Notes under the pieces: model-generated
What the model was told of the DNA's origin: nothing
What the model saw: the letters and a program-made list of their open reading frames with translations, nothing else
The model's database searches: none
Shown: positions 22,442 through 64,000 of the stretch, piece after piece
Layout of the letters: each line of letters begins with the position of its first letter
Numbering within the stretch: the stretch's first letter is position 1
Source of the DNA: Sphaerodactylus townsendi
Lineage: Eukaryota
Direction: 5' to 3'
NCBI RefSeq assembly: GCF_021028975.2
Contig: NW_025950352.1
Coordinates: forward strand, 682,001 to 746,000
DNA length: 64,000 bases
Translations under genes and position numbers: made by a program

Positions 22442-22590
22442 NNNNNNNNNNNNNNNNNNNNNNNNNNNNNNNNNNNNNNNNNNNNNNNNNNNNNNNNNNN
22501 NNNNNNNNNNNNNNNNNNNNNNNNNNNNNNNNNNNNNNNNNNNNNNNNNNNNNNNNNNNNNNNNNNNNNNNNNNNNNNNNNNNNNNNNNN
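22442..22590. other. Assembly gap (run of N)
   Basis: Continuous Ns. Confidence 1.
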
Positions 22591-36360: not shown

Positions 36361-40242
<3,882 letters not shown>

Positions 40243-47000: not shown

Positions 47001-50000
47001 TGGCAGTGGTAGCTGTTCTGGGCACGGCTCTCAGCCACCGCCAGCCTCCGCTCCAGGAAGCGCTCGTACTCCCCCTGGGACACCAGCTGCAGAGACGGGA
47101 GCGGCTTCAGAGTGCCCCCACCCCAGGAGGGCGGGGGGGGGCAGGAAGACACAGGCAGCTGTGAGGGGGGGTAGATGTGGGGCTTCCAAGTCCCCAAAGC
47201 CAGCAGGCTTTGCCGGGGGGGGGGGGGGGCAGGAAGAAAGGCTGCTCCGTGGTCCCTCCAGCAGCCAGTCAGCCTGCCAGCCTGTGTGCAGGGCACGGCT
47301 ACCCAAGTTGCAGAAGCGGCCACTCACCGCCCGGATCTCTCGATCCTGAAGGTGGCTGCTGCAGGCGTAGCTGTCGTCCCGGAAGGGGCAGCCCACTTGA
47401 GGCTCCTCGCTGCAGTTGACCAGCTGCCGCAGGCACTCCCTGGGGGAGGAGGAGGGAACATGCCACCGTCGGGCTTATGGCTGCCTGCCCTTCTCCCCCC
47501 ACCCCCTGTGCCTGCCCTTCTCCCCCCACTCCCCAGACGGCAGGTGCAGATTACCTGCAGAAGCTGTGCAGGCATTCACGCAGCAGCACGCCCTCTCCTG
47601 GCTCCACGTCAAGGTAGCAGATGCGGCACTCGGTTGCCTCTTGGGTGGGCACCAGGGCCTCTTCGTCCAGCTGGCACAGTTGCTGGAAGTTCTGCCTCCG
47701 TTCCTGCTCCAAAGCCTGTGTGGGAGCAGACAACGAGAGCGGAGCAACGGGCACCCTGGCGGACACACCTGCCGGGACAGCACTCGGCCCAAACCAGGCC
47801 ACGAACCTCCTTGACGCCTGATGATGGCGCAGAAGCTCCATCTGCAAACCTTTGGCAAGCAAAAGTCACCAAGCTCCCCCCGCCCCGCCCCTTCGGATTT
47901 CAGGGCCCTCAGTCAGCTTCCACAGCAGTGCCACGGAGCATGAATGGTGAATGAGGCCACGGAGCATCTCTGGGCAGGACCTACCACAGTTTGTGGCACC
48001 TCTAATTCAACTAAAGCAGGAGGAAGTAGCTGCAGGAGAGAGGACCGAGCCCCACAAGCTGAGCAGAGCGACGGGGAGGGGGTGGGGAAACCACCAACCA
48101 TTTTGTCCTGGAGGCCTTTCCCTAAGAACATAAGAACAAGCCAGCTGGATCAGACCAGGGTCCATCTAGTTCAGCACTCTGCTACTCGCAGTGGCCCACC
48201 AGGTGCCTTGGGGAGCTCACGTGCAGGAGGTGAAAGCAATGGCCTGCTGCTGCTGCTCCTGAGCACCTGGTCTGCTAAGGCATTTGCAACCTCAGATCAA
48301 GGAAGATCAAGATTGGTAGCCAGAGATTGGTAGACATCCCTCCCATCTCCTGGGCTGCTTCAAGGTCAGCCTCTCCAAGCAATAGTTGAGGTTCCCGATC
48401 TCTGCATGGCCGGAGTGGGGGGTGGGGGGGCTTGGCTTGCTCCTTGCCTCCTTTCTACCTCTCAGGGGAACCTCCCCCTCCTCACCTGCCCAAGGCTCCG
48501 TGTATGGCTGGGTCTTGCTACAGAGCTGTATAGCGATCAGGGTCAGCTCTTGGGAGACGCAGGCTCAAATACTTGCTCCACCGTGGATGCTCATTGGATG
48601 ACCTTGGGCCAATCACAGCTGCTCAGCATGACCTTCCTCGCAGGATGGTGGTTGTGAGGATAAAATGGAGGAGGGGAGGGCAAGGTCGCGTGGCACTGTG
48701 AGCCCATCACGTGGCAAGAGTTGGGCCGGGAGTTTGACTTTCAGCAAGGGCATCTTGACAGTGTTCAGGAAGCCTCCAAAGACAGGTCAGCTGCCCGTTC
48801 AGAAACGGCACTCATCCAAACAGCACCAACCCCCAACTGGGCAGAATCCGTACCTGCCTGCCCACCCATCGTCCCCTCCCCCATCTTGTAGAACAGCCCG
48901 CCTGGAAAGGTTAGGAAGCCCCCCACTCCTCTGGCTTTCTGCAAACAACGAACCACTGAATTACTCCACAGGGCCTTTCCGCAAAAGTAATAGGGCAGCA
49001 CTGCGCAAAACAATTCAAAAGGTCACTTGAATGAATGATTAGGGACTGGGGGTGTGTATAGTTTGGATCTCCTATGTCAGTGTTGGCGAACCTATGGCAT
49101 GGGTGCCAGAGGTGGCACTCAGAGCTTACTCTGTGGGCACGTGCAAACAGAGAGCCCCCATCTAGGCGGCTGGCTGGAGCCACTGGGCAAATCCAATTAC
49201 TAGCATTAAACCTAAGACCTAGTTTTGGGGAAGCAGTGTAGGTAACCCTGTTAAGCGCTGTTAAAACCCACTGATTTTCATGCAAAGAACAAAAGCGCAA
49301 TCCTTTACCTGGGAGTAAGCTTGGTTGCTGGCAATGGGGCTTGCTTCAGAGCAAACCCTCCTAGGGTCGTGATTCACACGTTGGAAGAGATGCATGGTTG
49401 CTTCAAAGCAAAGCCACCGACTACCTCCAAGCTTACTCCTGAGTAATGCACGCCTCGGAGCCAATTGTTTTTTCTAAGCAAAAACCTCAGTATTCAGGTT
49501 AAATTGCCGTGTTGACACTTTGCGATAAATAAGTGGGTTTTGGGTTGCAGTTTGGGCTGCACTCGGTCTCAGAAAGGTTCGCCATCACTGTCCCATGTAA
49601 TTTTGACTGTTCTGACTCACTCCGGATAATTTGCCTGGAGTTCCAGTGAGAAAGGTGGACTATAAATAAATCAAATAAATGTAAATAAGTAAGGCGGGGT
49701 TGATGGGAGTCACCTGCTCATCTTGAGCTGGGAGTAGAAGAGGCTCATGCTGGAGCCCTACTCACACACCCCCACACACACACACGCGCTGCCACCCCAA
49801 AGTACTTCCTCCCCCTCTGCCTGGCGCGCCACATGCAGACTTCTGCAAGACAGGGATGCTGTGAGAGGGAGAGTCCTTCTGCTTGGGGGCAGCCGTTGTC
49901 CAGAGCACAGCTGCTTATGCCAGCAAATGGAAACCACAAGGAGCCCACGGGGTTTGTGGCGGCTCTTCTTGCCTGTCACACAAGCCCCTTATTCGCTTCT

Positions 50001-53000
50001 TCAACCCCCGGCCTCCCCACAGCTGGATCTACCACCCTCCACGCAGCAGCCACAGGGGCAGAACCGTTTGGTCTTTGCTGGACTCCCCCATCAGGGAATA
50101 GGAAGGTCTCCCAACCTGAAGGCCTCAGCAGGGGAGAGCAGAAGCATCTGGGGGGGGCACTTTTTGCCAATTTGTCTGCTCTTGAGGCGTGGTGGAGACC
50201 CCCCCCCCCCTGCTGTTTCTGCCTATCCCACGAAGGGACATGCATAGCCGCTTGGGAAAGCCATTTCCTGGCAGCAGTTCTGCAATGACCCCCTGGGCCA
50301 GGTCCACTGCTGCTCGCCCCCTGGTGTGTTGATGAGCCAGTCTTGGGGTCAGGGGAGCAGCCTTCGCCCCCCCCCCCCTTCAGGGACTGTGCTGTTTTTC
50401 TCAGAAAAGGACGTCGGGGCCAAATGAGCGCCTGCTGAGAGCCACAAAGGGCAGGCCAAACACTTTGGCTCTGTGGCCAATTTTCACAGGACATGATTCC
50501 CAGGAGGACTCTTCAGTGGGAGCTGACCAAAGCACCCCCGCCCCCTGCCGAGGCAGGCGCTGAACAGCCAGGCAAGGACCACGCGGCAGCAGATAGCTGG
50601 CAAATTCCTTGGCAGAGAGAAAGCTCCCGCTTGAGGGAATCTGGCTACGGACCGGCATGAGGCACGGCCACAACTCTTCTGCACGCCTCTTAAGCGGAGT
50701 TAGAATCGGTCCAGCTTCTACACAGGGAAATCCTCCCTGTACGGCTAAGGGCGGACATTGGGTACTTGACCCAGACGTTCAAGACGGATACTGAGAAAGC
50801 TGGAAAGGGTCCAGACCAAAATGGTCAAAGGCAGGGGTTCCATCATGCCCCACGAGGAGAGACTTAGGGAGCTGGGAATGCAGAGAAGGTTAAGGGGTGA
50901 CATGACAGCCATATTTCAATATTTGAAGGGATGTCATGTTGAAGAGGGAGCCAGCTGGTTTCCTGCAGCTCCAGAGACCAGGACCAGGACCAATGGATGC
51001 ACACGACAGGAAAAGAGATTCCACCTGAACATTAGGAAGAACTTCCTGACGGTGAGGGCTGTTTGACAGGGGAATATGCTGCCTTGGAGAGTGATGAAGC
51101 CTCCTTTTTTGGAGGTTTTTAAACTGGACGGCTGCTTGTCAGGAGTGCTTCGACTGTGTCTTCCTGAATGGCGGGGGGTTGAACTCAATGGCCCTTGGGG
51201 TCTCTTTCAACCCTGTGATTCTACGAATCATATTGCTCCTTAGAGTCCAACAAGATCTTCAGCAGTTGTCGTAAGCCAAAACTCCCTTCATCAGATACAA
51301 ACAAGAGCCTTCCACTGAAGTCCAATGCTCCAAAAACCATCATTTACTTGCCTTCTAATGCACCAAACAGTCACAAATAAGCTTAGCAGTTGGGACTAAG
51401 GGGAGAGGTGCTCATGGGGTTGAAAAACTGTCCAAAGGGCAGCGAGGAGGTATAAACAGGTAGTTCTAGGAAACGGCACCCAGTTCAGCTAATCAGAAAC
51501 AGACGCAGACAAAAAGTGGTGCTTATTTACTCAAGGAGTCGTTCTACTGTCAAGTTCACAAATTCACCTTCAAAACGGGGCTAGACAAATTCCTGGCAAA
51601 GAGATCCATGAATGACCACTTGCCCCAGTTACCAAAGAAAGCCTCCCCACTCAGGCAGGATACCTCTGACACCTCATGCAAGGAGGGGGCCATCAGAGAA
51701 GAGGCTCGTCCTCTGCCCCCATTTCTCAGCCTTTCAGGGTAACTGGTGTGAAGCAGGAAGAGGAAGTAGAGGGGACAACACAGATCTGACCCAGCAGAGT
51801 TCTTCCGTCAGGCTCTCTTACAAGAAACATGAATTTCTGGTCCTGTCCCTGAAGCTGCGGGCAGGCCTGGGGGGCAGTCAATGGGTCACGCAAGAATTAG
51901 CACTGAGGGGTGGGGATCAGTGGGGGCAGCCCCTAGACAGGCAAAAAAGGTCTTCTGGAGGGTCAGTTCCTTCCTCCCGACAGCAGGGGAACGCTGACAC
52001 CCGGTTCTTTCCCAGCCTCACCTTCGCCCCACAAATCCAAACAGCTCCAGCACCAGGTTGGCCTTTCTGGCCCACAGGAATCATTTAATAGAATAAGGCA
52101 CTTGTGCTCCAAGTCTCTTCAAATATACAAACACTTCACAGAAATAAAACCCGTCTCAAAAGGGCCCTTGAAACTTCAACGTCAGACAGAACACAGTGCT
52201 CAGTGCAAGGGAAGGCCGGTGCCTCCCCCAGCGGGATTTGTTCGGTCAAACTCAGGCCCTCAGAGGTTCATGGCCTGCAATTCCCAGCAGCCCCTGCTAG
52301 CGTGGCCAATTGGCCCTGCTGGCACGGGCTGCTGATGGGAATCGTAGTCCAGGAACACCTGGAGGGCCTGAGTTTGACACCTATGGATGAACTGGGGGGT
52401 GGCTGCCCCAGAAGGGCAGATTTGCACCAGACCCCCAAAGGCACAGACCCATCCCCTGAGAAGCCAACTTCTCTCTGGTGCAGACAAAGTGCTTGATGCT
52501 CCTGCTCAGCAGCTCAGGAAGCGTCTGGGGGGTGGGGGGTGGGGAAGGATGCTGCCTGCTCCGACCGTCAGCAGAGCAAGTTCAGCCCCAGTGGTGGGTC
52601 GCACCGAGAGGCCTCTTTCCTTGCGCGTCTCCTCTCCACAGGGCGGGGAGCAGAGCCCGGGGCACGGACAGCCTGCTCCTCAGAGGGATCAGCACCGGCA
52701 GCTGGACAAGGTGCCCCAGCATGCAGCGGGCCGAGTTGCTTGCAACAGCAGGCATGTGATGGATCCTTCATGTGGCACTAGAAGGCAGCAGCACTGGAAG
52801 CCCGCCCACCCACCCTCCATGATCCAGGGCCAGAACCCCCCAAGAGCGCTGATCAAGCCAGCCCAGGAGCCAAACTGGAGCCTTTCTGTGCAAGAGGCCC
52901 CCCCCCCCTTTGCAAGGAGGCTTTGGTCGGCAGAACTGAGCCAGAAGGCAAAGATCCCAGGAGATACCAACCAGCCCCAAGCAGGGGGTGATGGGGGGTT

Positions 53001-56000
53001 GCAGCAAGGACCCCCAACCACTGGGGCATTGTCATCTAGAGACCACCACGGCCATGCAACCTGCTCGTGTCACCACAGAGGCCTCCAGCTCCCCTGCGCT
53101 TTCACGGGTGCCTCTTCCCACAAAACTGCCTCCCCCAGCCTGAACGATCCAGGCAGCTCCCCGGGCTCAGCAGGCAACAGCAACATTGAACAAGTGATTC
53201 TCAGAAGCAAAACAAGGAGTCAGAGAGCCTGCCAGCAGGAGGCGCCCTTTCCTCCCCCGGCCTGGCTCCTCTCCGCAGCCACAAACGTCTCCCAAGAGGT
53301 CCTGCCTGCGGGCCAGCTCAACTCAAGGCCCGGCTGCAAAACAGGAGCTCCGCTGCTCAGGGCTCCGGATGACAGCTAGGAGAACTCCGAGGACAGGTGG
53401 ATGAAGTCATCCAGGGACCCGGGGCCGTGGGCACAGGGCACAGCCAGACCGTCTTCTCTCCTTCCCTTTTCCTGCCACAAGAGAAAAAAGAAAGAAGAGA
53501 AGAGAGTCATTGGGGGCTAGGCTCACCTAAAGGGGTGAAGACATGGGGCGGGGGAGAGAACAGAAGAATTCTGAAGAAAATGGTCATCCCCCCAAACAAA
53601 GACTTTCCCTTATTTTTTCAAAGGAGGAAAGAAACATTTGGCAAGCGCCAGACAGCCAATAAAACGTCATTTCTATAAAAGTTCAGATTTGTCATTTAAA
53701 ACAAGGTTTATACCAGAATATGTAACGTTAAGACTTATTTAAGAATCTGACTCGCAAAATAACTTTTTGTATGCTGTGGACACACGTGTATTTTCAAGCA
53801 TGTATGTGCTGCTTAAACTAGATTACTTTTGTCTATAGCAGTGGTGGCGAACCTATGGCATGGATGCCAGAGGTGGCACTCAGAGCCCTCTCTGTGGGCA
53901 CGTACAGAGTGTTCCCCATCTAGGTTGGCCTGGGCCACTGGGCTCGATTATTAGCATTAAACCTAAGACCTAGTTTTGGGGAAGCAGTATAGGTAACCCT
54001 GTTAAGCGCTGTTAAACCCCACTGATTTTCATGCAAAGAACAAAAGCGCGATCCTTTACCTGGGAGTAAGCTCGGTTGCTGGCAATGGGGCTTGCTTCTG
54101 AGTAAACCCTCCTAGGGTATTGAGTAAACCCTCCTAGGGTATTGAATCACCCATTGGAAGAGTTGTATGGTTGCTTCAAAGCAAAGCCACCGATTACCAC
54201 CAAGCTTATTCCTGAGTAACGCGTGCCTCAGAGCCAACCGTTTTTTCTAAACTAAAACCTCAGTATTCAGGTCAGTGTTGCGCCAACTGCACTGGCTTCC
54301 AGTAGAGTTCCGGATCGTTTTCAAGGTGTTGGTGCTGACCTTTAAGGCCTTACGCGGCCTGGGACCCTCGTATCTTCGAGACCGCATCACCCCATATGTT
54401 CCCACACGGCCTCTTCGTTCCGTAGAGGCCAATTTGCTAGTGGTTCCCGGCCCCTCGATGATGCGGCTGGCCTCCACACGGGCCAGGGCCTTCACAGCCC
54501 TGGCCCCGGCCTGGTGGAACGCTCTTCCACCAGCTATCCGGGCCCTGCGGGACCTTGGTGAGTTCCGCAGGGCCTGCAAGACAGAGCTGTTCCGCCGGGC
54601 CTTTGGAGAGACCAGCCGCTGATGGTGCCCCCCCCCTCTCTTTGGCCCTACACCTGGGCCTTTAACATCTATCAAGATCTGCCGTTCCTCTCTAGAGGGA
54701 AGAATTTAATATTAGGTATCGGGCACCACCTATACCTATATATATCTATGCTTTTATTCATTTTACATTTTATATGTTAATATACATGTTTATATGTTAA
54801 TATGTAGCTAGTTTCGCTGCTTTTATAAGTTTTAGCCTATTTATGATATTTTATGACTGTATCCACTGTGTGCTGTGCGCCGCCCAGAGCCCTTCGGGGA
54901 CGGGGCGGGATAGAAATTTAAAGTATAAAATAAAATAAATAAATAAATTGCTGCGTTGGCACTTTGTGATAAATAAGTGGGTTTTGGGTTGCAATTTGGG
55001 TACTCGGTCTCGAAAAGGTTCGCCATCACTGGTCTATAGTGTGCTATCTGAACAAGACGCTACTGCGTCATGTAACACACCCAGCGCTTCAAAGCTGCAG
55101 AGCTCCAAATAAGCTGTGATCCTGAGGTGATCCTGTGACCCTGACTCCTGAGGTGGCGCACCACATGCGGGGTCTCTTGGTTGGGTTTTGGGAGAGAGGG
55201 CAGGGCAGCGATTGTGGGGGTGGGGGGAAAGGATTCAAATTATATTTTGTATCCTGAGGAAACTACTGTCCGCTCTGGACAGCTTCCGAACTGAGGAGGG
55301 AAAACTCTCGGTTGTTTGTTCTCGAAGAAAACCGGGCCTCCTCTTCGGGGTGCTCGTCCTCCTAGCCAGACTCCTCCTCTGAGAAGAGTTCTCTCTCTTC
55401 CCTGAGGTCGTATTCGCCCTCGGAATCTGAGGAGGGCACTCTCTGAGGACTGGTGTGCCTGCACTTTTGGGCCGCCTTAATGGGCCAGGCTGCATCCCCA
55501 CCCCAAAGGAGTTGCATGTGGCTGGATCCGCAGCTGCTAAGGGGCTTGTGGCCCTCACGGGGGTGAGGCGTGGAGACATATCCATTAACCCCAGCCCTGG
55601 TAAGCTCTGCCCAAAGAGAACGTTCACCTGCTTCTTGAGGACTTCCTTAACAAAGACACGGAAGTCTGGTGGCCGAGGGGGGAGGGGGGACTGGGGGCGG
55701 GCACATTTCCCAATTGGGAATCCTGCTGAGAGGCACAGGGATTGATCAATTCCTCTGGCATGTTGCCAGAGCAGCTGGGAACTCCGGCTGCATTTCGGCA
55801 CGGTGTTGTTCTCGCTTTCATGGCTTAGGGAGCAATTTGGCCACTGTGTTCTTTGCCATTGGGACACCCTTCGTCAGCAGGGCTGCTCAGAAGACCGTGG
55901 ACATGCTGACGAAGGCTTCCAGGGGCCAGTTCCCCATATTCTTGGAGAGGAGGTTGGAGTTGGAGCCCCACCACATCTTAAGAGGCTGGGGAGGTGCCCC

Positions 56001-59000
56001 ACCACCTGTAAGGCTCCCGGGAGAGGAAGCTGTAAAGATCAGAGAAGAGGGGCCAGCAATCCCGGCAAGGGGTAGGTTGGAGGAATTAGAGTAAGGAGAG
56101 AGGGGAAGGAGACAAAAGAGGAACAAATGCACAAAAGAGGCAGGGTGGAGCAGGTAATCAGAAGCATGCTACTCCCCTTGGAGGCAGGAATCACACTGGA
56201 GCAAAGGAGAAGGGGTCCCTCTCCATAGGGAGAGGAAGAAATTTCATTTCCTGCCTCCCCAATGGGAACCATCCACAAGATGTCCTCTAGCTCAAGGGAG
56301 AACTACAGCATTTCCACTTTCAAACCCCATAAACGACTACCAAATAACGCCACTTAGACACTGAAGTATAAGTAGTGCATTTCAGGTAACTAAAGCAGTA
56401 AAATAAATTTCGTCTCACTAAACTGGTTTCCCCAACATGTAACTCCAAATACTTCAAACACAGTTTTCCTTCCCATAGCTTCAAAATCTACAGACGTTTT
56501 ACGCCTCTTGGCTCACCCTGGCCCACCTTCACTTGGCCAAGCCAGGGCCCCTTTAACTCCGCAGCACCTTGTTTCTGCCACGGCCACCCCAGTACTGCTC
56601 CACTCAAGCCGGCACCACCTCCCTTAAGTGCGGCACAGCCCAAGCGCGGAAACCTTGGGGGCCTAGGCCCCCCCACGGCCATCAATTGGGAAGGCACATT
56701 TGCACTCCACTTCGTGCCTGTGGGTTTCTTCCCAGGGCTTCAGCATAGTTATTACCCGGCTACTGTGGGAGACACCCTGAGTAAGCCCCCTACGGCCTGC
56801 CACTTCCCTCCAGAAAGGGGTAGGGGTCCCTGTTGCAAATAATCTCACTTCTTGCATTCTTTTATTCCTTCTCCACCAATAACTCACAACCCAGCCTGAA
56901 CACGCACACACAAAACAAGACGCACAACCTCACAGGTGAGGAACAGATCATAAAGATGAAGATCACGCTGAAGGGCAGCTGTTGCCCACTAAGCATCCAG
57001 CCAGACCTTGCCAAGACCACAGAACATTCCGCGGGGATTCCCTCACTCAGGCAGCAACTGGGATTCTCCCACAGAGTTTTTGAGCGGAGAAAAAGCGGCA
57101 TCTTTACCTGCTGGTACCGCAAGATTCCTTCTTTCTCCTGCTGCATCCGCCGCAGCTCCACGTCATCTGGTCTGTAGCTGCCAGGAACCACGTAAGCAGC
57201 AGGCCGGTCAGTGCTGCACATTTCACAGCCAGGGCGGGTGGGCTTGTTGATGAATGTGCAGGTGGGGCACGACCACCCAGCCTGCAAGACAAGCAGAGGA
57301 CCCTGGCTGAGCGGCCGCTCCGTGCCCTGGAGCCCCCCCCTTCACCTACAGTCCCCCCCAGGATTGAGGCGCATCTCCCACAGGGGACAGAGGGTCCTAC
57401 CTGGGTGGGGGAAGGGGGGGCAACCTCTGGAGGGGCTCGAGTGTGGCTGGGAAGGAAGTTGGAGAGCTGCAGCGCAGACAGCCTCTCCTCGAGATCCACC
57501 TTCTTGCTTCCATGCGATGCACCTGCTGGTGAAAAATGCACCAGGGAGAAACGTTACCTCCTCGCAGGGAGACAGAGGAGGAGGCTGGCAACCGGCTGAT
57601 GCAAGCGTAGGGCCACCCACCTGTCTTTGGCAGAGGGCTGGAGGATGGCTGCCCAACATTAGAGCCGTCCAAGAGCGAAGGTGGGGCTGGCTGCAGCAGC
57701 ACCCAATCTCTGTCCTCTTTGTAGCGCTGCTCTGAGAGCTTCGCAACCTTGGCCGAAAGCAAGTAGAGAAAGGCCGTGTCTCCATCCTTGCAGATCCCGT
57801 AGGAGCCCACAGTCCGGTCGTCCACACAGAGACACTGGCCGATAATCCAGCGCTGGACGCTAGGGTGAAAGCCATACTCCTGAAAGACCTTCGAAAGGGC
57901 AGAAAAGGAACTAATTAGTCCAAGTTACCAGTCCCTCCGTTATGACCTCTGAAGCTCTCTGGACCCCTCCCTGACAGGGAACACCTTTGGGGTGAGAGAG
58001 CAAAAGGCAGAGCAGATTCTCTGGGCTCCTCTTTCTGCCCCTTCCCTGCCCCCCCCCCCCCGGGGCCACTCGCTACCTTCTGTCGGAGAGCAGCAACGGT
58101 GGTATACGTGTGGACCCGAATGGTGATGTTTGCTGAGCACGTAGCATCTTCCACGCCCACCTTCATGCTGCAGGGAAGGGACACGGTGAGCCAGATGACA
58201 AGGGGAGAAAAGCCACACCATCAGATGGCCCTGTCACCCTCAGGGGAAGCTGGCCCAGCCACTGGCTCCACGCGGGCACACAGACCTGATCTCGCTCGTG
58301 GGGTAGCAAGACTCCTTCAGCAGGACACGCAGAGCAGCCTGCTGCTGAGCCAATGCTGTGGCACAGCGCACAGCCTCTTCCTGGTTCCCGAGCCCAATAG
58401 CCACAGACAGCTGGAACGCCAGGTCTTCTGCGGAGAGAAGGACACATAGACAAGCAGGGGCTGACCAGTCTTCTTACTCTCCAAGCTGCCCGCGTCCCCC
58501 TCGCAGGGAAGCTTCAAGCAGTCACAACATTCCCCTCCCGCCTCAAAAATCTGGCTGAACCAAACAATTCTGCAGGCTTCTCGTCACCATGCAGGACTGC
58601 GTTCCCCGAGCCCATTTCTACAAGCTCCAATGACATCTGCAGCAATGCATTCTCCTCACTCGCTCCCCTTGGCACAGACCAACAATCTCTCAGAGAGCCA
58701 CCCCTGTCTCCCACCTCAGAGTGGTCAGAGGAAAGGTCCCAACCCACTGATGCCCTCATCCCTGAGGACTGGGCAGACTTTGTAGCCAAGGAAGCAAATC
58801 TGAGTAGCTGAGCACTATTTTCTTTCAAGCACGACGACTATGGCAAAATGTCCAGGCTGCACAACCAAGGTCTTTCCTAGTAAGTTTTGCTATTGTCCGT
58901 CCTCCAACGCTACTTGTCCACTGAAACAGTTGGAGCAAGCCAGATTTCTTGCAGCCTCCAGTGGCCCCTTTCCCAGTCCTGCCAGCCACCAACCTTTCAT

Positions 59001-61280: not shown

Positions 61281-64000
61281 CCCCTATATCTCCTTGAGAG
61301 GAGGTTGAGCTGGAGCCCCACCACATCTTTAAGAGGCTGGGAGGTGTCTCCACCACCTGTAAGGCTCCCCGGAGAGGGAAGCTGTAAAGATCAGGAGAAG
61401 AGGGCCAGCAATCCCGGCAAGGGTAGGTTGGAGAATTCAGGAGTAAGGGAGAGAGGAAGGAGACAAAAGAGGAACAAATGCACAAAGAGGCAGGGGTGGA
61501 GGAGCAGGTAACTGTGAAGCATGCTACTCCCCCCCTTGGGAGGCAGGAATCACACTGGAGCAAAGGAGCAGGTCCTTCCATAGAGAGGAAGGCCTCATTC
61601 TGCTCTCCCCCCCACGGGGAACCATCCACAAGATGTCCTTCTAGCTCAAGGGAGAACTACAGCATTTTACTCTCAAAACCCCATAAACGACTACCAAATA
61701 ACGCCACTCTAGACACTGAAGTATAAGTAGTGCATTTCAGGTAACTAAAGCAGTAAAATGTAAATCTCTGGCCTCATTTCAAACTGGTTTCCCCAAACAT
61801 GTAACTCCAAATACTTTCCAAACATGCTTCTTCCTATACTTCCTTCAAATTCAAGCAGACGCTTTTTATCACTTCTTATTCTCACCCTCTGCCCACCTCA
61901 CTACGCTTGCGGGCCCCCTTTAACTCCGCGAGTAATCTTGTTCTCGCCAATGCCACCCCAGCAATTGCCCACTCGGCCGCACCACTCTCCTTGCGCGTGC
62001 ACAGCCTGCTGAAACCTTTAGCCTAGGGCCCCCACGGCCATCAATTGGGAAGGCACATTTGCACTCCAATTTCGCTCGTGGGTTTTCTTCCCAGGCTTCA
62101 GCATAGTTATTACCCGCTACTGTGGGAGATTACCCTGAGTAGTTTTCCCCTACGTCTTTCCGTCACTCTCCAGAAAGGTAGTCCTGCTACCAATCTCACT
62201 TCTGCATTCTTTATTTCTCCACCAATAACTCACAACCCAGCCTGAACACGACACACAAAATAACAAGACGACAACTCACAGGTGAGGAACAGATCATAAA
62301 GATGAAGATCACGCTGAAGGGCAGCTGCTGCCCACTACATCCAGCCAGACCTTGCTAAGACCACAGAACATTCGCTGATTCTACCCAGGGCAGCAACTGG
62401 GATTCTCCTCCCACAGAGCTTTTGAGCGTGAGAAAGCCGCGGATTCCTCATCTGCTGGTAATCAAGAAGATTCCTTTCTTTTCTCTGCTGCATCCTCAAA
62501 TGCAGGCTCCAATGGCCATCTGGTCTGTAGCTGCCAGGAACCAACGAAGCAGCAGGGCCGGTCAGTGCTGCAATACTCTCTACTAAGCCAGATGGTGGCT
62601 TGTGCTGATGAACGTGCAGGTGGGGCACCCACTCACCCAGCCTGCAAGACAAGCAGAGGGACTTCTGGCTGAGTCGTCAAGTGTCTTCTGGTGCCCCCCC
62701 CCCTTCGGGCCACAGTCCCCCCTAGGATTGAGGCTGCTCCCAATAGGGACAGAGGGTCCCTACCTGGGTGGGAAGGGGGGCAACCCCCTGGAGGGGCTCT
62801 CGAGGTGGCTGGGAAGGGAAGCTGGAGAGAGGCTGCAGCGCAGACAGCCTCTCCTCGATCCACCTTCTGCTTCCATGCGATGCACCTGCTGGGTGAAAAT
62901 GCACCAGGGAGAACGCTACTCCTCCTTGCAGGGAGACAGAGGAGGAGGAGGAGGCTGGCACCGGGATGCAAGCGGTGAGGGCCACCCACCCGTCTTGGGC
63001 AGAGGGCTGGAGTGATGGCTGCCCAACATTAGAGCCGCCCAAGAGCGAAGGTGGGCTGGCTGCAGCAGCACCCACCCTGTCCTTTTCCTTTGTAGCTGTT
63101 TGAGAAAGCTTCGCACCTTGGCCGGTATAAGTAGAGAAAGGCCGCGGTTCCATCCTTTTGCAGATCCCGTAGGGAGCCTACAGGTCCGGGGTCAGCCCAC
63201 ACAGAGACACTGGCCGGCCAATCCACGCTTGGACGCTTAGGGTGAAAGCCATAATTCTGGAAAGACCTTCAAAGGCAGAAAAGGAACTAATTAGTCCAAG
63301 CTATTAGTCCTCTGTTATGACTCCTGAAGTTTCTGACCCCTCCCTGACAGGGAACACCTTGGGTGAGAGAGCAAAAGGCAGAAAGAGATTCCTCTGCCTC
63401 TTTCTGCTCCCCTTTCCCCTGCCCTCAGCCACTCGCCACCTTCTGGTCGGAGAGCAGCAACGTGGTATACGTGGACTAATGGTGATAAATAGCTGATAAC
63501 GTGAGTATCTTCCCACGCCCACCTTCATGCTGCAGGAAGGACACGTGAGCCAGATGACAAGCAGGAGAAAGTGCCACACCATCAGGATGGCCCTACAATT
63601 TCAGGGGAAGCTGGCCTGCTCACTGGCTCCACGCCGGGCACACAGACCTGATCTCGCCTCGCGGGTAGCAAGACTCCTTCAGCAGGACAGAGCAGCCTGC
63701 TGCTGGAGCCACCGCTGTGGCACGCGACAGCCTCTTCCTGGTCTTGTTTCTCCAATAGCCACAGACAGTTGGAACGCCAGGTCTTCATGGAGAGAAGGAC
63801 ACATAGATAAGCAGGGCTGACCAGTCTTCTTACTCTCCAAGCTGCCCGCCCGCAGGGAAGCTTCAAGCAGTCACAACATTCCCTCCCGCCAAAAAATCTG
63901 GCTTTCGAACCAAACAATTTCAGGAGGCTTCTCGCCACCATGCAGGATCATGCTCCTCGAGCCCATTTCTACAAGCTCCAAATGACATCTGCAGCAATGC
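61281..64000 (-). pseudogene. Degraded direct duplicate of ~55932-58648 (SHARPIN exons 4-8 plus introns); probable false duplication
   Basis: Colinear, same-orientation copy with many 1-3 nt indels that break the UBL and NZF frames. Its left junction truncates a MITE. Confidence 0.85.

Follow-up and report, generated by a model that had tools for sequence, protein, structure and literature searches.

We examined a stretch of 64,000 nucleotides (nt) from the gecko Sphaerodactylus townsendi (hereafter the window; contig NW_025950352.1, positions 682,001 to 746,000), which holds on its minus strand the gene that RefSeq names sharpin, and find that part of intron 8 of this gene is very probably a genuine proximal terminal exon, in an alternative-last-exon (intronic polyadenylation) choice with a form of 687 amino acids (aa) that carries a RING-between-RING (RBR) module. 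A reading of the DNA letters alone (the sequence-only reading) had picked out a pyrimidine tract and CAG acceptor ending at 53472, a 31-codon phase-0 frame and an ATTAAA at 52084-52089, all of which are present at those positions; the products, put there at ~442 and ~669 aa, in fact measure 460 aa (429 + 31) for the short form and 687 aa for the long. The argument is carried by a splice junction, a step in depth from exon to intron, and the conservation of acceptor, peptide and poly(A) signal, all of them observed; the rest is inferred. The elements of the exon, its joint and its conservation are, together, far beyond chance.

The gene is well anchored. Window positions 39004-62810 are base-for-base identical to JAHVXK020000019.1 (GCA_021028975.2, S. 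townsendi), and RefSeq lists two isoforms, X1 (687 aa) and X2 (686 aa), both with the RBR; isoform X1 (XP_048338527.1) is identical to the window's exons. Pfam assigns to it Sharpin_PH, LTM, ubiquitin, RanBP zinc finger, RING and IBR domains, and the order Sharpin_PH-LTM-UBL-NZF passes the Pfam curated cut-offs, with ubiquitin borderline, both in isoform X1 and in the short form of Gekko; proteins of Gekko kuhli and of other species in the databases serve throughout as proxies for the short form. Exon 8 (57108-57281, minus strand), the donor exon common to both forms, encodes the NZF (Pfam Zn_ribbon_RanBP) together with a helical extension like the "NZF tail" of HOIL-1L; it closes in phase 0 at 57108, where ...RYQQ is followed by gtaaag on the minus strand. 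The distal acceptor, competing for the long form, is that of exon 9 (47555-47715, minus strand, phase 0), which opens the RBR with RING1; intron 8 up to this exon spans 57107-47716.

Within that intron the elements of the proximal exon follow one another on the minus strand. The intron removed for the short form (53472-57107, 3636 nt, GT..AG, from the joint in run X4 described below) ends in a polypyrimidine tract and CAG acceptor (53472-53511), 40 nt rich in UCUU and CUCUCU, a candidate regulated 3' splice site. The coding part (53379-53471) comprises 31 codons, which open with a purine-rich stretch (EKGRRED), pass through a linker of variable sequence and close with a conserved C-terminal motif, the last 13 codons (53379-53417) forming an acidic-aromatic short linear motif whose core, F-I-H-L, resembles an LC3-interacting region (LIR). 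The stop codon TAG (53376-53378) has the same position in Gekko and Crotalus. It is followed by a 3' untranslated region (UTR) of ~1.3 kb (52066-53375; its lower bound is a putative cleavage position), along which run X4 has depth, and by a conserved 3'-end processing block (51996-52229) with U-rich and UGUA elements, the ATTAAA at 52089-52084 and a GU-rich downstream element; this ATTAAA is the sole AATAAA or ATTAAA on the minus strand between 53376 and 50000. Two polymorphisms fall within the exon in the mapped runs: 53446 A>G (plus strand), which turns the Leu of tail codon 9 into Pro, the Gekko and snake state, and a 9-nt insertion behind 52636 in the short-form 3' UTR.

To follow the use of the exon in RNA we mapped contigs from four sequencing runs (X1-X4, none recorded as RNA) on positions 51800-57700. 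Runs X1-X3 cover introns and exons evenly with zero splice joints, and we therefore treat them as genomic DNA. Run X4 has three canonical intron removals (57525/57621, 57280/57400 and 53470/57107), none of which occurs in X1-X3, and because of these spliced joints we treat it as RNA. The junction 57108->53471, which the sequence-only reading had named as a check, is thus present in X4 and absent from the DNA runs; it skips 3636 nt with GT..AG on the minus strand, and its contig, of depth 247.7, covers 30 letters of exon 8 and 573 of the terminal exon. Depth in X4 is 370.2 for the exon 6-8 contig, 1-5 in intron bins, including 4.8 in the bin just upstream of the acceptor, and 111-248 over 52299-53470. 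At 57107, one letter past the exon end, the exon 6-8 contig breaks off with a G common to both continuations, which fits an assembly-graph branch with two continuations; about two thirds of its depth takes the tail path, a rough figure as contig depths are means, and about one third is not accounted for by that path. The short form looks like the major SHARPIN isoform in this one RNA-like run. The RNA contigs are broken because of two sets of repeats, a hairpin or MITE-like (miniature inverted-repeat transposable element) repeat at 52260-52390 inside the short-form 3' UTR and very high-copy repeats in part of intron 8 (53770-55148), which reach depths of 10^4 to 10^6 in the DNA runs.

Several points weigh against this account of the exon, the roughness of the two-thirds figure among them. 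The record of run X4 does not say RNA, and as the RNA-like evidence for S. townsendi is this one run, it gives no view of regulation by tissue or condition. Depth falls from 171-248 to 58.8 across the ATTAAA region, and contigs cannot show transcript ends, so that cleavage at 52066 is inferred; moreover, the contig of depth 58.8 goes on for ~1 kb past the ATTAAA, to about 51034, and some transcription must run on beyond that signal. The joining of exon 8 to exon 9 in S. townsendi comes from RefSeq models and the contig end, not from reads. Finally, intron 8 of the passerine Oenanthe holds repeat arrays only, with no tail open reading frame (ORF) in any frame, a result that we read as non-detection and not as proven loss of the tail exon. 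The Oenanthe melanoleuca locus is itself unusual: the genuine NZF exon is preceded by a tandem series of at least 10 partial copies of its own start (L008 13762-15137), and intron 8 contains microsatellite-like arrays that include repeated fragments of the start of the RING1 exon (L008 15328-16870).

There is nothing biologically new in the terminal exon, which is SHARPIN's ancestral last exon and is already annotated in other species, with orthologous peptides in the public models or introns of 14 other taxa. The same C-terminus ends models from Gekko kuhli (463 aa), Crotalus adamanteus ("sharpin", 460 aa), Ophiophagus and Micrurus (UniProt), Xenopus laevis (OCT75099.1), echidna (XP_038616009.1), Monodelphis (XP_007488798.1) and Gracilinanus (sharpin). 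Spliced cDNA with the tail exon comes from a bird-like sample (a contig, L005) and from a fish-like species (a full mRNA encoding 500 aa, L003/L004); the latter, a Logan transcript with DDFVYI (SRR6291289/90), groups with ray-finned fishes (ultrafast bootstrap 93, Shimodaira-Hasegawa-like approximate likelihood ratio test 96, with a midpoint root only). In the turtle Carettochelys and the owl Strix the tail ORF lies in intron 8, between the NZF and RING1 exons, with a single ATTAAA 2.4 kb and 1.3 kb downstream, respectively; the protein records retrieved for both species are of the long form only, and leave the tail exon unannotated. In this sense the exon, which the sequence-only reading called hidden, is so only in part: it appears to be missing from the S. 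townsendi protein set as far as the searched collection shows, and database searches suited to find a short isoform of S. townsendi returned none, but in several other species it is the annotated SHARPIN C-terminus. In an RBCK1-like model of Salmo salar (305 aa), ...YQQ is followed by EKERKE... and by the string DQDNWLTHS, which may represent a diverged fish tail exon of putative homology.

Comparison of these loci shows which parts of the exon are held constant. The 40 intronic nt before it are identical in Sphaerodactylus, Gekko and Crotalus, as are its first 17 nt, and Xenopus shares the 20-nt acceptor core (TCTTCTCTTCTTTCTTTTTT) without change, owl almost without change, while the intron flanking this tract is not alignable between species. 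The middle of the 31-residue peptide varies freely; its last 12-13 residues are identical or near-identical in Gekko, Crotalus, turtle, owl and echidna. The prediction that DDFxxL would prove selectively conserved when the orthologous intron of other species was searched is borne out, the motif being kept in reptiles, birds and an amphibian, with the intronic ORFs of turtle and owl among them. Against Gekko, the short-form 3' UTR has patchy identity of 74-86%, rising at the 3'-end block to a blastn match of 82% over 237 nt; in the alignment of 51980-52240 mean column identity is 87%, with the ATTAAA and the next 25 nt invariant, and ATTAAA is the first poly(A) signal after the stop codon in gecko, snake, turtle and owl. 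An AlphaFold2 model of the Gekko short form places a helix at residues 414-433, after the NZF, and gives residues 435-463 no secondary structure and a predicted local distance difference test score of ~30 (from a shallow alignment of 13 rows); the tail is accordingly predicted to be disordered. Taken with the model, this pattern of conservation suggests that the splice acceptor may be regulated, that the poly(A) site is probably genuine and that the predicted disordered tail carries a short linear motif. The modeled helix has a counterpart in exon 8 of the window (57108-57200): a HOIL-1L-like helical extension after the NZF appears to be kept in non-placental SHARPIN, where it may change affinity for linear ubiquitin.

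What the terminal motif does is less certain than that it is kept. That it docks some partner is considerably likelier than that it has no function, and the leading candidate partner would be a protein of the ATG8 family. The sequence-only reading took DDFIHL for a LIR, and in part this stands: the string fits [DE][DE][WFY]xx[LIV], as do 0.4% of random 31-mers of the same composition; it also resembles the LIR of p62, DDDWTHLSS, over DD-aromatic-x-HLSS. Of the 15 taxa compared, 11 have the core [W/F/Y]-x-x-[L/I/V] in the homologous position, the range extending from a fish-like species and Xenopus to echidna; in nine, the window included, the Phe follows DD or ED, and the xLIR pattern of the iLIR work is also fitted in nine, among them S. 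townsendi. ULK1 and ATG13 carry F-type LIRs, which the fish-like DDFVYI resembles, and the bird FIHV fits the GABARAP-interaction motif. Against this reading, the core is lost in elapids, whose FIHF has a non-canonical last position, and in placentals, and the combined acidic and core pattern fails in marsupials (DG/DA) as well as in these two groups. Placentals replace the Phe by Leu or Pro yet retain the spacing of hydrophobic residues, which suggests docking of a more general hydrophobic kind, and conservation reaches past the core into SSEF. Strings of the form [WFY]xx[LIV] are common, most such candidates do not bind, and the literature searched holds nothing that links the SHARPIN C-terminus to LC3 and nothing on the tail motif. 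Binding of the tail to ATG8 proteins is therefore possible rather than probable, and we put forward only tentatively the larger idea that DDFIHL is a working LIR which would make the short isoform an autophagy-receptor-type adaptor for ubiquitin and ATG8, and leave the long isoform an E3 ligase. Other motif classes that we considered by eye, namely FFAT, the PKI-type nuclear export signal and the PUB-interacting D-hydrophobic-Y, are poor fits; a search of the 31-residue peptide against PDB sequences gave no match even at E = 10.

A further possibility is that the exon acts at the level of RNA only, as a decoy or premature-termination device that lowers RBR output, with a functionless peptide. 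The strongest conservation is indeed non-coding or synonymous, in the 20-40 nt tract, the purine-rich first 17-20 nt of the exon and the ATTAAA block, and synonymous divergence (dS) is low in the last 13 codons, over which the ratio of nonsynonymous to synonymous divergence is too noisy to carry weight. Even so, we consider this improbable: echidna and marsupials, with no RBR to regulate, keep both exon and motif (identical in the former, near-identical in the latter); differences within the last 13 codons fall mostly at third codon positions or are conservative, and similarity drops immediately after the stop codon; and the codons that spell the motif in Xenopus and in the fish-like species are different ones.

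Nor do we think that two separate genes lie here, SHARPIN ending at the tail exon and the RBR exons forming a gene with its own promoter. Three assemblies are annotated in this way, with a separate gene called over the RBR exons downstream of a short "sharpin": Crotalus (L001 16362-23120), Gekko kuhli (L002 22770-27770) and Xenopus laevis (L007 23694-28479). The reading is nonetheless very improbable, as exon 9 lacks a start codon, extends the frame of exon 8 in phase 0 and is collinear with HOIL-1; RefSeq joins exon 8 to exon 9 in S. townsendi, Euleptes, turtles and dozens of birds; sturgeons have a PH-to-RBR protein of 718 aa; and in run X4 the exon 6-8 contig stops at a branch point, with the third of its depth outside the tail path already mentioned. 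Neither style of annotation, split genes or one long gene, records both isoforms. The sequence-only reading had proposed one locus with a short and an RBR 3' end as alternatives, and the junction in run X4 together with XP_048338527.1 supports it. Least likely by far is that splicing to this acceptor is mere noise or arises from a fault in a single assembly, for although the evidence is one RNA-like run and one contig, which reaches 30 letters into exon 8, the depth of that contig is two thirds that of the upstream exons and ~50 times that of the intron, and the same junction occurs in independent cDNA or transcriptome sequences of snakes, a bird and a fish-like species, and in gene models of many taxa.

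The alternative last exon that we favor is thus part of a two-ended locus, and the comparison of species suggests its history. Tail exon and then RBR exons follow in this order in Crotalus, Gekko, Xenopus, turtle and owl, an arrangement that goes back to the ancestor of tetrapods and probably further. Judged from their loci, amphibians and sauropsids keep both ends, whereas mammals appear to have kept only the tail exon and lost the RBR exons: in echidna no RBR exons were found, and CYC1 lies within ~1 kb downstream of the tail exon. Placental tails (Myotis X1, felid X3) keep ...RREDG...SLD.LL.LSGDL with loss of the Phe, and the mouse protein stops earlier. The suggestion that the locus could model the loss of the RBR from mammalian SHARPIN thus gains from the orthology of the gecko exon with the monotreme and marsupial terminal coding exon and from the echidna locus without RBR exons, and both the alternative last-exon switch and this evolutionary idea are supported. 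On the account that we propose, mammalian SHARPIN became a non-catalytic subunit because a short isoform pre-existed and the distal exons were lost.

We suggest that the switch would operate as follows. Exon 8 would be spliced to the acceptor at 53472, with cleavage and polyadenylation at or after the ATTAAA at 52089-52084, and this proximal route would yield a 460-aa PH-LTM-UBL-NZF protein with a disordered 31-residue tail; where the tail exon is skipped, exon 8 would be joined to the acceptor of exon 9 (47715), and the product would be the form of 687 aa, whose RBR ligase module resembles that of HOIL-1. The invariant UCUU-rich tract of 20-40 nt and the purine-rich start of the exon may tune this choice, with PTB-type and SR-type factors as candidates to act on the acceptor, as expected from general knowledge of UCUU-rich and GAA/GGA-rich elements. 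SLDDF[IV]x[LIV]SSEF would then serve as a short linear motif that docks a partner. A fuller scheme, which we regard as doubtful, would have this tail motif be a working F-type LIR or GABARAP motif some 350 million years old or more, through which ancestral short SHARPIN would bridge ubiquitin, bound by NZF and helical tail, to ATG8-coated membranes; the UCUU-rich acceptor would set the ratio of adaptor to ligase, and mammals would have lost first the ligase exons and then, in placentals, the motif.

CYC1 lies downstream on the plus strand, at about 38555-39745; MAF1 and CYC1 flank SHARPIN in Crotalus and echidna, and CYC1 flanks it in Oenanthe, turtle and owl. Positions 61352-64000 are a direct partial duplication of SHARPIN exons 5-8 and the first 1.1 kb of intron 8, with 82.6% identity over 2773 nt to 56001-58648, and the copy runs off the end of the window; its NZF exon (~62335-62652, minus strand) is frame-broken, so that the duplicate resembles a fragment of a pseudogene, lying directly upstream of the genuine exon 1. 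The sole run of N in the window is at 22442-22590, and an Rfam scan of the whole window matched no family.

The two-ended locus has practical consequences. The RefSeq protein set of S. townsendi appears to lack what is likely the major SHARPIN isoform, and other assemblies split one locus in two. SHARPIN work comes from mouse and human, while non-placental animals have in addition the predicted helix after the NZF, the terminal motif (from frogs, and probably fish, to echidna) and a 3' end that adds the RBR; chicken cells or Xenopus would be systems in which to study the balance of adaptor and ligase and the partner of the tail. If the tail does bind ATG8, there would be a direct link from linear ubiquitin to autophagy that is invisible in placental models. 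The literature searched holds nothing on RBR-bearing SHARPIN outside mammals or on SHARPIN exon choice, and the two-ended locus, the highly conserved acceptor and the terminal motif appear to be undescribed in it.

Among known motifs the gecko tail is close to the LIR of p62/SQSTM1, DD-F-I-H-L-S-S-E in the one against DD-W-T-H-L-S-S-K-E in the other, both being acidic with aromatic-x-x-aliphatic spacing and disordered, and the fish-like DDFVYI is close to the DDFVM[VI] of the F-type LIRs of ULK1 and ATG13. The gecko motif differs from that of p62 in having Phe instead of Trp and in its extreme C-terminal position.

The nearest precedent for switching an RBR on and off by RNA processing is in the paralogous gene RBCK1/HOIL-1L, whose single locus encodes both a full UBL-NZF-RBR ligase and a shorter variant, RBCK2, that lacks the RBR; going by the title of the report, this splice variant inhibits the ligase (Tatematsu et al., 2008, J Biol Chem 283:11575, cited in PMC10511788). 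The SHARPIN switch differs in being in another gene and at another exon, and RBCK1 and RBCK2 have neither a PH domain nor a DDF tail; antagonism is known for RBCK2 and would be hypothetical for short SHARPIN. According to a review of SHARPIN variants, SHARPIN lacks an NZF tail helix, and the stretch beyond its NZF is unconserved and apparently unimportant (PMC9884707). This holds for placentals only; elsewhere SHARPIN has a HOIL-1L-like helix, as modeled, and a deeply conserved terminal motif. Another close counterpart is the terminal exon of monotreme and marsupial SHARPIN, which is orthologous to that of the gecko, lying likewise after the NZF exon in a MAF1-SHARPIN-CYC1 neighborhood, and which ends in the same conserved 13-residue motif in echidna and in SLD[GA]FLHLSSEFS in marsupials; mammals differ in that the tail exon is their only 3' end and in having no long helical linker after the NZF.

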